A DNA stretch of 8,964 bases from Octopus sinensis (lineage: Eukaryota), in the NCBI RefSeq assembly GCF_006345805.1, contig NW_021828212.1, forward strand, positions 1-8,964, given 5' to 3'. Below the pieces are notes generated by a model. It saw only the letters and a list, made by a program, of their open reading frames with translations, was not told where the DNA came from and did not search any database. This document shows positions 1,351 through 8,368 of this stretch, piece after piece. The position numbers were made by a program, and so were the translations under genes. Every line of letters begins with the position of its first letter. Position 1 is the stretch's first letter.

Positions 1351-1369
1351 TATGTACGTATATATTTTT

Positions 1370-1588
1370 TTATTCTTTTACTTGTTTCAGTTATTTTGAC
1401 TGCGGCCATGCTGGAGCACCACCTTTAGTCGAACAAACCGACCCCAGGATTTATTCTCTGTAAGCCTAGTACTTGTTTTATCGGTCTCTTTTGCCAAACC
1501 GCTAATTCACGGGAACCTAAACGCACCAGCTTCGGTTGTCAAGCGATAGTGAGGAGACAAACACAGGCATACAAACAAACATATGCAT

Positions 1589-1634
<46 letters not shown>

Positions 1635-1820
1635 GCACATACATATATATATATACGACGGGCTTCTTTCAGTTTCCGTCTACCAAATCCACTCACAAGG
1701 CTTTGGTCGGCCCGAGGCTATAGTAGAAGACACTTGGCCAAAGTGCCACGCAGGGGGGACTGAACCCGGAACCATCTGGTTGGGAAGCAAGCTACTTACC
1801 ACACAGCCACTCCTTCGCCT
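1370..1820 (-). mobile_element. tRNA-derived SINE, family 1, copy A (near full length)
   Basis: Minus strand begins GGCGAAGGAGTGGCTGTGTGGTAAGTAGC (A-box-like TGGCTGTGTGG, B-box-like GGTTCAGTCCC), then a CORE-like ACTTTGGCCAAGTG, an internal (TA)n and the tail CAGCATGGCCGCAGTCAAAATAACTGAAACAAGTAAAAGAATAAAA. It is collinear with copies C and D. The octopus OR1/OR2/OK SINEs are candidate names, not verified. Confidence 0.92.
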
Positions 1821-2009
1821 ATGGATTGAAACAAGTAACAGAAAAGAATATAACGAATGAAATTATATTAAAGGAATTTTATGGAACGAGGCGAAGAATA
1901 CAAGAGAAGATGGAAGTACGAAAGCGATTCTGCGCTCCGTCGTGATGAGACGATGACAGCTTTGAAGACGAGTTAACAGGCAAAATGGCGCAGGGATGGA
2001 GCGAAAAGA

Positions 2010-3199: not shown

Positions 3200-3749
3200 C
3201 GTGTCTTGTGGTAAGAAGCGTGCTTCCCGACCACATGGTTCTGGGTTCAGTCCCGCTGCATGGTACCTCGGGCACGTGCTTTCTACTATAGCCTCGGACC
3301 GACCAAAGACATAAGGTCTAGGGTCGAGTTCTCCGACTAAAACCCGTCAATGCAGTGCTCCAGCATGGCCGCAGTCAAGCAACTGAAACAAGTAAAAAAA
3401 AACTATAAAAGAATATATAATAAACGGAAACGGAAAGAAGCCGGTCATATACGTCGTGTGTGTGTGTGTGTGTATGCATGCATGTATGTACGTATGTATG
3501 TATTTAGGTATTTGTGTGTCTATGTTTGTCCACGCCCCACATCGCTTGACAACCAATTTTGGTGTGTTTACATCCCTGTGACTTAGCGGTTCGGCAAAAG
3601 AGACCGATAGAACAAGTACTAGGCTAAAAAAGACATAAGATCTGGAGTCGAGTTCTCCGACTAAAACCCGTCAAGGCAGTGCTCCAGCATGGCCGCAGTC
3701 AAGCGATTGAAACAAGTAAAAAAAAAAACATAAAAGAACATATAATAAA
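3200..3749 (+). mobile_element. tRNA-derived SINE, family 1, copy B (rearranged, 3' tail present twice)
   Basis: Head 3200-3308 (TGTGGTAAGAAGC, GGTTCAGTCCC), tail copy 3305-3424, body resumes at ACGGAAAC (about 3424) with an internal (GT)n/(GTAT)n, final tail 3629-3749. Confidence 0.9.
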
Positions 3750-3750
3750 A

Positions 3751-4185
3751 TGTTCTTTCTTTGACTTGTTTCAGACATTTGACTGCGGCCGTACTGGAGC
3801 ACCGCCTTAAAGGGCTTATAGTCGAAGAAATCGACCCCAGGACTTATTCTTTTGTAAGCCTAGTACTCATTCTATCGCTCACTTTTGCCGAATCGATAAA
3901 TTACGGGGACGTAAGCACACCAACACCGGTCATCAAGCGGTGACGGGGGGACAAACACAGACACAATGACACACACACACAAATATATTATATATATATA
4001 TATATATATACATACATATATATATATGTGACGGGCTTCTTTCAGTTTCCGTCTACCAAATCCACTCACAAGGTTTTTGTCGGTCCAAGGTTATAGTAAA
4101 AGACACTTGACCAAAGGTGCCACGCAGTGGGACTGAACCTGGGACCATGTGGTTGGGAAGCAAGCTTCTTACCACACAGCCATGC
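3751..4185 (-). mobile_element. tRNA-derived SINE, family 1, copy C
   Basis: Reverse complement is collinear with A and D: GCATGGCTGTGTGGTAAGAAGC head, GTGAGTGGATTTGGTAGACGGAAACTGAAAGAAGCCCGTC, internal (TA)n, tail GGCGGTGCTCCAGTACGGCCGCAGTCAAATGTCTGAAACAAGT. Confidence 0.92.
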
Positions 4186-4565
4186 AGGGTTTTTAAACAT
4201 AGAGGCTTTACTTCTACACACCAGATTAATTCAATTCGTCCTTAGTCAAAATACACCCGTTGTTAATGTCTTGTCATTTGTATTTGTGTACCATTTCTCC
4301 GGGGTTTTTTTCCGTCCCTGTTTTCGTATACATTCGCGACTTTCTTCCAAGGAATCTAGTGCGCTTAGCTTAGTTTTCCTTTGGAGCTGGCCACATTGGA
4401 GCAATCTCGAGTATAACCAGCCGAAATTGCAAAGATAATCTGGAAATCGACTGAGGAAAGAAAACTCCGAATGGCCCGTCCTTGTTGCCCTGTATCGTCT
4501 GCCTGGATGTTTTATTGTCCTTTTTTTGTATTACCTAACTGTCTGGATGTTTTGCGTTCTTGTCC
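4186..4565. mobile_element. Unclassified interspersed-repeat fragment (possibly PLE-related)
   Basis: Non-coding, with an internal direct repeat CTGGATGTTTT at 4503 and 4543, and abrupt junctions with SINE C and the LINE. The resemblance to an octopus repeat is from memory only. Confidence 0.3.
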
Positions 4566-5799
4566 CAGCTCTAACAGTATTATGACTGGGTGTTGAGGCA
4601 GTTACTCAACAAATCAAATGTGGACCTTGATTTTGCAAAAGCTTTTGACAAGGTGGATCATGGTATGATATGTCACAAACTACGTGACCTCGGCATAGCT
4701 GGAAAACTTGGAGTGTGGTTGCATGACTTCCTGAAAGATAGGAGTCAGGCAGTAGTGGTTAATGGAGCCACCTCTATGAACACACAAATAGTGAGCGGTG
4801 TTCCACAGGGCACTGTCTTGGGACCACTGCTTTTTATAGTGGCCCTCTCAGATATGCCCTCAAATGCCCGGATAGCCACTCTGGCCAGCTTGCAGACGAT
4901 ACGAAAGTCTCGCAGAAAATACAGAACCCCAGCGATGTTGCACACCTGCAGCAGGAGTGGACTCAATCTACAGATGGACTGAAGATAATAATATGCAGTT
5001 TAATGCTGAAAAATTCCAGGCACTGCGCTACCAGCATCCAAAACTGAATATTAAACTTACAGGATACACCGGTCCACAGGGAATTTCAATCCCAGAGCCT
5101 AAGTCTGTGAGGGACCTGGGTATCGACATGAGTGATGATACCTCTTTCCAAGTGCACATTACCAGGAGGCGACAAAGTGCAGACGACTGGCTTGGTGGAT
5201 CCTAAGAACATTCAGAACCAGAGATAAGGAAACCATGATGGTCCTCTGGCGGACATTCGTCTCAGTCGCCTGGATTACTGCTCACAGCTATGGTCACCCA
5301 CCAGTGTAAAATTAACAGCGGACTTGAAGCAATCCAGAGAAGATTCACAAAGAAGATCGTCTCTTTGCAACAGCTCAGCTACTGGGAAAGGTTGAAACAG
5401 CTAAGACTCTACTCCCTGGAGAGAAGACGGGAGAGGTATGCAGTAATATATGTCTGGAAGATCCTGGAAGGAATTGTGCCAAATTTTGGCATTGTAAGCT
5501 ACACCAATGCTAGAACGGGACGACACTGCATCGTGCCAAAGATCCCAGCAATGCCATCGCGCTTTAGGACCAGTTACTGCAACAACCTGGGTTTTAAGGG
5601 CCCACAGCTTTTTAATATTCTCCCAAAGAGTCTGAGGAACTTGCACAAAGTAGATGTAGCGGTTTTAAAATCAAAGCTGGACATCTTCCTGTCAAGAGTC
5701 CCAGATGAACCTACCTCACGGCAAGAGGTGCAAATGAGAGTAGCTATATCAAACTCCATTCTTCACCAAGTGCCACATATTAGACGAGGTTCGTCGTAA
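4566..5799 (+). pseudogene. Disrupted LINE ORF2: reverse transcriptase and C-terminal domain
   Basis: Motifs LDFAKAFDKVDH, SGVPQGTVLGPLLF, (F)ADDTK (ADD at 4892-4900), NNMQFNAEK, VRDLGI, LDYCSQLWSP and LSYWERLKQLRLYSLERRRER. The frame is restored across five -1 shifts (about 4890, 4958, 5167, 5262, 5322). There is one in-frame TAA (4572), an apparent in-frame 9-nt loss before LDF, and a natural stop at 5797-5799. Confidence 0.93.
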
Positions 5800-5868
5800 T
5801 AACAGTGTAGCACAAAACGGCGGTGCATCAGCATGGCCGCGGCTCTGAGCTGAAACTAGAAAAAAAAA

Positions 5869-5869
<1 letters not shown>
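4566..5869 (+). mobile_element. 5'-truncated non-LTR retrotransposon (LINE) of the CR1/L2 group
   Basis: RT and C-terminal ORF2 remnant, a short 3' UTR (5800-5859) with stem-loops, then A10 (5860-5869) running into (TA)n. No TSD is visible. Confidence 0.93.

Positions 5870-5901
<32 letters not shown>
5870..5901. repeat. (TA)n(CA)n microsatellite at the LINE 3' end
   Basis: Directly visible. Confidence 0.9.
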
Positions 5902-5903
<2 letters not shown>

Positions 5904-6032
5904 GCTATATCATCTACATACATACTGAAATATGTGTACTGCTACATATGCACTCATTAACATCTAGAGACAGCGCATCATGTTATATACACCAGAGTGG
6001 GACACATAACTTTAATATAAATATATATATAT

Positions 6033-6447
6033 GGCGCAGGAGTGGCTGTGTGTGGTAAGTAGCTTGCTAACCAACCACATGGTTCGGGTTCAGTCCCACT
6101 GCGTGGCATCATGGCAAGTGTCTTCTGCTATAGCCCCGGGCCGACCAATGCCTTGTGAGTGGATTTGGTAGACGGAAACTGAAAGAAGCCTGTCGTATAT
6201 ATGTATTATATATATTATGTATGTGTGTGTGTTTGTGTGTCTGCGTTTGTCCCCCTAGCATTGGTGACAACCGATGCTGGGTGTTTACGTCCCCGTCACT
6301 TAGCGGTTCGGCAAAAGAGACTGATAGAATAAGTACTGGGCTTACAATGAATAAGTCCCGGGGTCGATTTGCTCGACTAAAGGCGGTGCTCCAGCATGGC
6401 CGCAGTCAAATGACTGAAACAAGTAAAAGAGTAAAGAGTAAAGAGTA
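6033..6447 (+). mobile_element. tRNA-derived SINE, family 1, copy D (full length)
   Basis: GGCGCAGGAG start, A-box-like TGGCTGTGTGTGG (6043-6055), B-box-like GGTTCAGTCCC (6087-6097), internal TA/TG tract, 3' stem-loops and an (AAAGAGT)x3 tail. Both flanks are (AT)n. Confidence 0.93.
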
Positions 6448-6511
6448 TATATATATATATATGCACACACACACACACGCATATACACACATAGCACTGT
6501 ATGTATGGCCC

Positions 6512-6557
<46 letters not shown>

Positions 6558-7354: not shown

Positions 7355-7905
7355 GCCGCCACGAATCATCGACGGAGCCTGCCTACCTGGTTGTACGACC
7401 TACGTTTAAATAGCAGCCAAATCGCCCCCAAATCACCCTCACACCGCCGCCTAAGAGAACGACACATCAAATGATGTTGTCATGGGTTTCTTTTATATAT
7501 ATAGAGAAAAAAGACGGGAGGGTCACAGCTAGAATGCCCTTGATCATAGTCCTGCTTGTTGAAGGCGCGTGGCTAAGTGGTTAGGGTGTTCGACTCACGA
7601 CCGCAAGGTCGAGAGTTCGATTCCCAGCGGTGTGTTGTGTCCTGGAGCAAGTTCCAATCTACACACCCGGCAAAAATGAGTTGTACCTGTATTTCAAAGG
7701 GCCATCCTTGTCATGTTCTGTGCCATGCTAAATCTCCCTGAAAACTACGTTAAGGGTTCGCATGTCTGTGGAGTGCTCAGCCACTTGCACGCTAATTCCA
7801 CCAGCAGACTGTTCCGTTGATCGGATCAACTGGAACCCTCATCGTCGCAAGCGACGGAGTGCAGCGATAGTCCTGCACGATCTGCACAGACCTGAGGTTG
7901 AACCA
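7355..7905 (+). mobile_element. Older interspersed repeat interrupted by the family 2 SINE
   Basis: Its 3' part matches the fragment at 752-826, and the similarity continues after the SINE at 7877-7903. The left boundary is uncertain. Confidence 0.55.
7556..7866 (+). mobile_element. tRNA-derived SINE, family 2, with a 10-bp TSD
   Basis: A box TGGCTAAGTGG (7570-7580), B box GTTCGATTCC (7615-7624), CORE-like TGTGTCCTGGAGCAAG, two 3' hairpins. Flanked by the exact direct repeat ATAGTCCTGC (7546-7555 and 7867-7876). Confidence 0.88.
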
Positions 7906-8138: not shown

Positions 8139-8368
8139 CCTCTTGTTGGTAGGGCAGACACTCGTTTGGTGGGAGAGGGATCCCCTTGCTTATAGGGGAG
8201 ACTCTCTTGTCAGAGTGGAAGTCTCTCTCGTTTGGTGGGAGAGACTCCCATGCTGACGGAAAAGACTCCCTTGTTGATAAAGAGACTCTTGTTGCTGGGA
8301 AATAATCCTTCGTTGATTGGAAAGACTCTCTCGTTGGTGAGAGAAACTTTTGTTGGTAGGAAATACTC
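8139..8368. repeat. Degenerate minisatellite, unit about 19-23 bp, about 11 copies
   Basis: Approximate consensus CTCTTGTTGGTGGGARAGACT. CTCGTTTGGTGGGAGAG is exact at 8161 and 8227; TTGTTGGTAGG occurs at 8143 and 8350. Confidence 0.8.

Follow-up and report, generated by a model that had tools for sequence, protein, structure and literature searches.

An octopus SINE shares the two-hairpin 3′ tail of a CR1/L2-type LINE

The window (the whole stretch of DNA that was analyzed, 8,964 bp) is AT-rich, microsatellite-laden eukaryotic DNA with a single long coding remnant. Since the best named protein relatives of this remnant are those of Octopus vulgaris and Argonauta hians, the window is octopod genomic DNA. 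This remnant is the decayed ORF2 of a LINE (Table 1), and its conceptual translation matched RVT_1 in Pfam with an E value of 4e-18. When compared by tblastn with P0121 and an Argonauta ORF, it ran through frames +3/+2/+1/+3/+2/+1, i.e., five frameshifts, had one in-frame stop near 4572, and gave no alignment to either protein upstream of 4560, indicating that the copy is old and 5′-truncated. The stop codon of ORF2 is followed immediately by a second TAA (5800-5802), with which a short spacer begins, then by a tail ending in a plain A10 with no octamer repeat and, 3′ of the tail, by a (TA)n(CA)n microsatellite.

The window also holds SINE copies A to D and short orphan tail stubs. In BLASTN comparisons, SINE D was 78-79% identical to copies A and C over ~420-450 nt and 86% identical to a copy from O. 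vulgaris. The last 50-60 nt of the SINE form its tail. Every SINE copy ends in this module, the SINE type of which has the exact hairpin 2 CAGUCAAAUGACUG and AAGUAAAAGA repeats. Of the tails in the 9 kb of the window, five belong to SINEs and one to the LINE, and the 6.3-kb O. vulgaris locus of the LINE copy L003 contains two and one, respectively. A preliminary description of this DNA had called the SINE dominant, which describes its local density of five tail-bearing copies in 9 kb. Two candidate Pol III boxes, found by eye ~43 nt apart, are TGGCTGTGTGG, which fits TRGCNNAGTGG at 10/11 positions, and GGTTCAGTCCC, which fits GGTTCGANNCC at 9/11. No tRNA was found in the window by ARAGORN or by Rfam at E values up to 1, the latter returning solely microsatellite-driven miRNA and snoRNA pseudo-hits below the gathering score. 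The SINE stretch GGCAAGTGTCTTCTRCTATAGCC is one that we take to be CORE-like. The tRNA-derived Octopus SINEs OK, OR1, and OR2 were reportedly described by Ohshima and Okada in 1994, OR2 being a CORE-SINE, and given its putative tRNA-like head and its CORE-like stretch the SINE in the window may be OR2 or a relative of it.

Table 1. Coordinates of the LINE remnant, the SINE copies, and their tails in the window
Feature	Position	Strand	Remarks
LINE ORF2 fragment, 5′-truncated, decayed	4560..5799	+	Distal half of RT domain and C-terminal domain; ends at TAA 5797-5799
LINE 3′UTR spacer, stop codon to tail	5800..5818	+	No SINE similarity in MAFFT alignment
LINE 3′ tail	5819..5869	+	Hairpin 1 5818-5839; hairpin 2 5840-5852; GAAAC 5852-5856; TAG; A10 5860-5869
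SINE copy A	1369..1822	−	Tail 1373-1425; R1 71.3 bits
Orphan tail stub	1823-1853		GGATTGAAACAAGTAACAGAAAAGAATATAA; family D18
SINE copy B, rearranged, two tails	3200..3745	+	Tails 3349-3400 and 3673-3724; families D14, D17; R1 67.4 and 70.6 bits
SINE copy C, slightly 5′-truncated	3750..4190	−	Tail 3757-3808; R1 68.3 bits
SINE copy D, full length	6033..6445	+	Putative tRNA-like head; body CORE-like; (TA)n(GT)n internally; 3′ module; LINE-type tail 6382-6445
SINE D tail	6382-6445	+	Hairpin 1 6382-6401; hairpin 2 6403-6416; GAAAC; (GTAAAGA)n; R1 76.8 bits
22-mer sites (SINEs A, B twice, C, D, and LINE)	1402-1423(−), 3351-3372, 3675-3696, 3785-3806(−), 5819-5840, 6382-6403		

The LINE and the SINE meet in their tails. 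The sequences at 5819-5840 in the LINE (GGCGGTGCATCAGCATGGCCGC) and at 6382-6403 in SINE D (GGCGGTGCTCCAGCATGGCCGC) are identical at 20 of 22 positions, exactly as they had been quoted and counted in the preliminary description. Searching the window for the SINE 22-mer with up to three mismatches returned exactly six sites, whereas none was expected from 200 dinucleotide-preserving shuffles; besides the LINE site, these comprise five SINE sites, so that the same end was recovered on copies A, B (twice), and C, as had been claimed. BLASTN aligned SINE D 347-396 to positions 5816-5864 of the window (78.8% over 52 nt) and gave no LINE/SINE alignment further 5′, and when 150-nt stretches were aligned with MAFFT, the similarity set in abruptly at GG(Y)GGTGC, with none 5′ of it. 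Both methods therefore bear out the sharp upstream end of the similarity that had been described, the homology being ~50 nt long and terminal. The SINE shares only this terminal module with the LINE; the SINE body and the LINE ORF lie outside the homology. Two details of the earlier account needed adjustment. The short spacer behind ORF2 is real, but it separates the tail from the first stop codon by 19 nt rather than 20 nt. Likewise, both elements do run into CTGAAAC(T/A)AG and an A-rich end, which is A10 in the window LINE and (GTAAAGA)n in SINE D, but there are two hairpins instead of the single one proposed, and the quoted 22-mer corresponds to the first. Over a 45-column core, LINE tails and SINE tails are 68-89% identical, and the tails of the two elements are homologous.

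The tail of ~50 nt consists of four parts, namely, hairpin 1, hairpin 2, the motif GAAAC, and A-rich repeats of ~8 nt. Hairpin 1 has the nearly invariant sequence GGYGGUGC-NCCA-GCAUGGCC with bulged Gs, laid out as G-G-Y / G bulge / G-U-G-C, loop NCCA, and G-C-A-U / G bulge / G-C-C, and 16 to 20 of its 20 positions are identical between any of the LINEs and SINE D. Hairpin 2 has a stem of 5 to 6 bp in which sequence and loop length are free and the pairing is kept, as in CAGCC/GGCUG, CAGUC/GACUG, CGGCU/AGCUG, and CAGCCC/GGGCUG. It is followed by GAAAC, replaced by GUAAC or GAAAU in two copies. The terminal repeats are (CATTAAAA)2-3 in the LINE copies L001 and L009, (AATAAAAG)2 in L002 and L005, GTAAAAGAGTA in L010, and (GTAAAGA)3 in SINE D, and (GTAAAAGA)n is also among the repeat units of octopus tails.

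Two adjacent hairpins were predicted by RNAalifold from seven LINE and seven SINE tails. In an alignment of 16 tails, 96.4% of the pair cells were standard pairs, compared with 23-45% in slid controls, and the covariation score was 0.249, a value that none of 500 shuffles (mean 0.178) reached. Compensatory pairs, with both sides changed, occurred at columns 5/20, 27/40, and 28/39; the covariation is thinner than these counts suggest, because column 27/40 owes all six of its U-A pairs to related SINE copies, in which they may go back to a single event. Five tails folded singly each gave the same structure, with z scores from -2.2 to -3.8. The window LINE tail folded into the two hairpins with a minimum free energy of -18.8 kcal/mol (z -2.56; 60.9 bits with the covariance model R1) and the SINE D tail at -17.8 kcal/mol (z -2.79). 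The tail thus has a conserved two-hairpin structure. Since hairpin 1 keeps its sequence, including the loop and the bulges, and hairpin 2 keeps only its pairing, the pattern suggests that the reverse transcriptase (RT) may contact the bases of the former and recognize the latter by its shape.

Relatives of the LINE were sought with its C-terminal 169 aa, which had 437 homologues, and with the 402-aa conceptual ORF2 remnant, and the flanking DNA of the closest ones was taken. Together with the window copy, these make up nine LINE copies: L001, L002, L004, and L010 from ENA assemblies, L003 from O. vulgaris chromosome OX597818.1, L005 from an NCBI assembly, L006 from a Logan assembly, and L009, a near-full-length copy, from an A. 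hians scaffold. The eight relatives are 62-71% identical to the window copy at the amino acid level where full-length comparisons were available. The tail lies directly 3′ of ORF2 in all nine copies, which represent at least three octopod sources, with a spacer of 0 to ~130 nt among the relatives. The check that had been proposed, i.e., whether other copies of the LINE share this end, therefore came out in favor of the pairing, all eight independent relatives carrying the tail after ORF2. A further candidate relative, L008, was set aside, its translation disagreeing with the query and no tail being seen. The homologue P0005, 77% identical and labeled as Escherichia coli, is evidently a contaminant and had no contig placement.

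Positions 5819-5869 might instead be an extremely 5′-truncated SINE stub that was inserted separately and happened to land after the stop codon of a LINE that ends otherwise. SINEs are very dense in the window, and orphan tail stubs do exist there (e.g., 1823-1853), but a chance insertion does not agree with the finding that the other LINE copies (8/8), on various contigs and in various species, carry their tails in the same place relative to ORF2. Furthermore, hairpin 2 of the window LINE, GGCTCTGAGCT...TAG, resembles that of its close relative L006, AGCTCTCGAGCC...TAG, and is unlike that of the SINE, AGTCAAATGACT...AAG, which a SINE stub would carry. The identity of the window LINE tail to the SINE tails, 68-74%, also falls below that of the SINE tails among themselves, 79-95%. 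With the tail present in 9/9 LINE copies and a hairpin 2 of the LINE subtype, we rejected the stub, the probability of which we regard as minimal. The LINE-subtype hairpin 2 and TAG show the tail to be vertically inherited in the LINE lineage, of which it is a native part. A second sequence seemingly shared upstream of hairpin 1, ACTAAAAC in SINE B and L001, was dismissed as chance, as the close relative L009 does not have it.

Two more distant relatives, L007 from a Cherax crayfish (47% identity) and L045 (50%), retain hairpins and tandem repeats, with (TAACCTCCAGG)2 and (ACTTCAAGTA)2 as the repeat units, but their tail sequences are unrelated to those of the octopods, and R1 gave no match in either. 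We therefore discarded the idea that the tail sequence itself is ancient; the distant relatives share its architecture only, and this particular tail is a feature of the octopod lineage within the LINE group. Elsewhere, 34 matches to GGTGCNCCAGCATGRCCNCAG among JGI metagenome contigs, all in high-GC bacterial sequence lacking the remaining tail, and 15 matches to hairpin 1 plus CTGAAAC among GTDB genome contigs, all bacterial, were put down to chance.

LINE and SINE RNAs are generally known to undergo template switching with each other, and the tail might have moved in the opposite direction, having arisen in the SINE or elsewhere and been captured by an ancestor of the LINE through template switching or recombination. 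Such an event is not polarizable from sequence alone. However, the tail occurs in Argonauta and in LINE sub-lineages whose proteins are 30-38% apart, no tail-bearing SINE was found in 21 kb of Argonauta sequence, and the distant L007 and L045 likewise combine hairpins with repeats. This spread over divergent LINEs, and over Argonauta without a tailed SINE, points to a tail that is ancestral to the LINE group, and we consider a transfer from the SINE to the LINE very unlikely. Even if it were true, the inference of a present-day partnership between LINE and SINE would be unchanged.

The class of the LINE is best seen in the Argonauta copy. L009, despite two frame breaks, encodes an endonuclease (Exo_endo_phos_2, E 3.8e-12), an RT (RVT_1, E 4.8e-32), and the C-terminal domain, followed by the tail, so that a relative of the window copy has the EN+RT architecture; the window copy keeps the RT and C-terminal parts only. 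In amniotes, CR1 elements have EN and RT in one ORF, are frequently 5′-truncated, and end in a 3′ hairpin and an ~8-bp microsatellite (PMC8665684), and the wider CR1/L2 “stringent” group typically shows the same features (PMC3747384). The octopod LINE tails, a hairpin and then an ~8-bp microsatellite, have the 3′ end by which CR1 is defined (PMC8665684). The placement of the LINE in the CR1 group, as given in the preliminary description, is thus supported through architecture, namely, the APE endonuclease and RT of L009 and the hairpins with repeats of about an octamer, and a LINE of the CR1/L2 “stringent” type, with CR1 and L2 left undivided, is the assignment that this architecture supports. 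The homologue P0223 is named “mobile element jockey,” a name too broad to tell members of the Jockey/CR1 supergroup apart.

The arrangement has close parallels in known systems. The eel pair UnaL2/UnaSINE1, which belongs to the L2 clade and is experimentally proven, resembles the octopus pair in that the SINE shares the LINE 3′ tail only, that the tail comprises a conserved stem-loop and short tandem repeats rather than plain poly(A), and that the RT is modeled to recognize the 3′ RNA and then mobilize the SINE in trans, a step that in the octopus would be inferred by analogy (PMC3747384). The primary sequences of the two tails are unrelated, and the host of the octopus pair is a protostome. 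Unlike UnaL2, the octopus tail has two adjacent hairpins, the first sequence-conserved and the second conserved in structure only, and A-rich units of ~8 nt rather than TGTAA. In amniote CR1, a similar 3′ hairpin with the 8-bp microsatellite ATTCTRTG has been proposed as the RT recognition site, and the octopus octamers (CATTAAAA)n and (AATAAAAG)n fit this hairpin-plus-8-bp-microsatellite structure (PMC8665684). The likeness to amniote CR1 extends to the EN and RT in one ORF and the frequent 5′ truncation, and the difference lies in the tail sequence and the repeat unit. Some SINEs, such as the tortoise Pol III/SINE, borrow a CR1 end as in the octopus (PMC3747384).

Within the same phylum, bivalve pairs are known that join the Vhc_1 SINE to CR1-1_CGi/CR1-14_CGi and CORE, V, Meta, and Deu SINEs to CR1, CR1-Zenon, L2, and Nimb LINEs, with 3′ homologies of 35-61 bp at 72-95% identity, the same scale as in the octopus (PMC4758252; PMC11481361). 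The modular or “mosaic” evolution of the bivalve SINEs (PMC11481361) is likewise comparable to what we found between Octopus and Argonauta. The octopus, however, is a cephalopod, and the likeness to the bivalve pairs is one of homology length and identity and of the kind of evidence; no cephalopod pair appears in these two papers (PMC4758252; PMC11481361).

Under the stringent recognition model, which is summarized together with its experimental proof in the eel in PMC3747384, the RT of the LINE would bind the two-hairpin tail on its own transcript. Target-primed reverse transcription would then start within the terminal repeats, which would permit priming or slippage on the nicked target. Pol III transcripts of the SINE end in such a tail as well and would serve as templates in trans. 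Recognition of the tail by the RT and mobilization of the SINE in trans are thus what the analogy with these systems predicts for the octopus. A TA/CA/TG microsatellite follows within 40 nt in 8 of the 14 tails with enough flank (5/7 LINE and 3/7 SINE), whereas the octopus background for an adjacent microsatellite is 12.7% (binomial P ~1e-4), which lends weak additional support to a common route of integration. CR1 is among the recently active LINEs of O. vulgaris, in which SINEs and LINEs are described as having expanded jointly (PMC13282606).

As for the identity of the partner, the tail of SINE D, measured over the two hairpins and GAAAC, was 89% identical to that of L002, 85% to L004, 82% to L005, 74% to the window LINE, and 69% to L006, and the SINE post-hairpin sequence AACAAGTAAAAG is identical in L003 of O. 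vulgaris. The exact SINE hairpin 2 was present in none of the nine sampled LINE copies. Because the SINE tail is nearest to that of L002, which belongs to a sister sub-lineage of the window LINE, and its exact hairpin 2 is in none of the copies, the source and mobilizer would most likely be a sister sub-lineage outside this sample. The preliminary description had named this LINE family, or a close relative, as the mobilizer; of these two, the close relative is likelier, given the identity of 89% to L002 and 74% to the window copy. We conclude that the octopus SINE probably borrowed the tail of a stringent-type (CR1/L2) LINE, to which the tail is native, and that the mobilizer is likely a close relative of the LINE in the window.

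Elements in Argonauta share the head and the CORE-like body of the SINE at 82% identity and diverge into another 3′ part exactly at the internal (TA)n(GT)n of the Octopus SINE; in the 21-kb Argonauta locus, the LINE tail was found alone, with no tail-bearing SINE. This very small sample hints that the tail module may have been joined to the SINE body in the Octopus lineage. The shuffling of SINE modules that leaves the Argonauta elements with the shared head and CORE but another 3′ part would also suit a different account, in which the tail is a relic from the LINE lineage and the SINE has been amplified by some other autonomous element, such as RTE or Dong-R4, both of which are abundant and recently active in the octopus (PMC13282606; PMC9115989). 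The lack of an identical hairpin 2 in any sampled LINE copy fits this account as well. The tail, however, is terminal in every SINE copy, and hairpin 1 is ~90-100% conserved against an identity of 78-80% in the rest of the SINE copies, as a need for it in copying would predict. RTE-type elements, moreover, end in microsatellites of their own (PMC9115989), while the 3′ ends of the LINE and the SINE lie in the same microsatellite-adjacent context. We thus regard amplification by another element as unlikely and favor mobilization of the SINE by the CR1/L2-type LINE lineage whose tail it carries.

A broader form of this proposal can be put forward only tentatively, at somewhat less than an even chance. 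The octopus-specific SINE expansion, which accounts for ~8-12% of Octopus genomes in the literature, may have been driven by one CR1-like LINE lineage through the two-hairpin tail, in a pairing never described before. Hairpin 1 may be a sequence-specific RT recognition element that is conserved across Octopoda, from Octopus to Argonauta. Because the related SINEs of the Argonauta lineage carry another 3′ part, the gain of the module by the SINE may be later than that lineage or independent of it.

The papers searched contained no description of a SINE/LINE tail pairing in the octopus, although one may be on record in Repbase, Dfam, or SINEBase. A 2013 compilation of SINE/LINE pairs includes no octopus, no mollusc, and no LINE partner for OK, OR1, or OR2 (PMC3747384). 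In the portions available of the octopus repeat papers, SINEs are labeled “tRNA-Core,” “tRNA-Deu,” or “unclassified,” which are labels from automated libraries, with no partner named, and the LINE highlighted so far is an RTE. The same literature presents SINEs as the largest repeat class in Octopus genomes and as over-represented in brain transcripts and lncRNAs (PMC8967140, PMC9115989, PMC13282606).

That SINEs can carry the 3′ end of a stringent LINE is textbook knowledge (PMC3747384), and the octopus case adds to this rule and leaves it unchanged; it is useful to cephalopod genomics and unsurprising for a transposon specialist. The pair would give protostomes a tractable case of stringent 3′-end recognition with one sequence-conserved and one structure-only hairpin, and the recognition tail can serve to anchor the 3′ ends of both elements in annotation. 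Naming the autonomous LINE behind the SINE burst would open its timing, its lineage specificity, and its possible ongoing activity to study.

Every full SINE copy carries an internal (TA)n(GT/CA)n microsatellite directly after …GAAAGAAGCCCGTCG, and this point coincides with a boundary in comparison with Argonauta. The SINE-like elements in Argonauta hians (locus L009) share the head and CORE part of the Octopus SINE exactly up to the microsatellite point, whereas their 3′ part beyond it is unrelated. This pattern indicates that the Octopus SINE is a composite with swapped modules.

Features of the window and of the Argonauta hians locus L009
Feature	Sequence	Positions	Strand	Remark
SINE B	window	3200-3745	+	inner piece 3307-3420; own 3′ end 3629-3745
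Internal SINE microsatellite, (TA)n(GT/CA)n	window	6196-6245, 1560-1660, 3960-4030		
Second tRNA-derived SINE, distinct from SINEs A-D	window	7557-7865	+	Deu/CORE-like stretch GTGTTGTGTCCTGGAGCAAG
10-bp direct repeat	window	7545-7554 and 7867-7876		ATAGTCCTGC
Orphan tail stub, ~30 nt	window	1823-1853	+	final part of tail, GGATTGAAACAAGTAACAGAAAAGAATATAA
Degenerate 21-bp minisatellite	window	8199-8368		~8 copies, 63% match, consensus AGACTCTCTTGTTGATGGGAA
SINE-like element	L009	1440-1640	+	
SINE-like element	L009	16200-16390	-	

The window also contains a second type of SINE, flanked by a 10-bp direct repeat that is probably its target-site duplication. The two-hairpin tail, which the LINE and SINEs A to D have in common, is absent from the 3′ end of this element (…CGTCGCAAGCGACGGAGTGCAGCG), which presumably has a different partner from that of the SINEs bearing the tail.

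Two further arrangements involve the tail itself. In the body of SINE B, approximately 20 nt are replaced by a piece of about 115 nt that spans the 3′ module and the tail together with the A-rich flank downstream, and that is 94% identical to the 3′ end of SINE B itself. The piece could be the product of a local duplication, or else a truncated copy from the same subfamily nested within SINE B. The orphan stub shows that extremely 5′-truncated tail stubs exist in this genome. It is oriented opposite to SINE A, whose head it adjoins.

The Rfam "miRNA" matches (mir-297, mir-466, mir-3149, and others) at 2350-2435, 1580-1660, and 6440-6535 of the window all fell below the gathering score and are artefacts produced by (TA)n/(CA)n microsatellites, which are palindromic. 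A protein match to the C-terminus of the window LINE (P0005; a 94-aa fragment, 77% identity), labeled "hypothetical protein, partial [Escherichia coli]" in the database, is almost certainly cephalopod contamination of a bacterial assembly.

At the related LINE copy in O. vulgaris (locus L003, 3540-3900), an array of ~60-nt repeats (…GTGGCCGTTGCCAGCCTCGCCTGGCCCCCGTGCCGGTGGCACATAAAAAGCACCATCCG…) lies immediately 3′ of the tail, followed by another SINE-like body; the array appears to be a further octopus repeat family. TA/CA/TG microsatellites lie directly past the 3′ ends of LINE and SINE copies alike, in 8 of 14 cases against a background of 12.7% (P ~1e-4); they are seen in the 40 nt downstream of tails in the window and at L003 and three other loci with related LINE copies (L004, L006, and L010). 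Two explanations are at hand: the endonuclease may favor sites of this kind, or the tails may give rise to the microsatellites.
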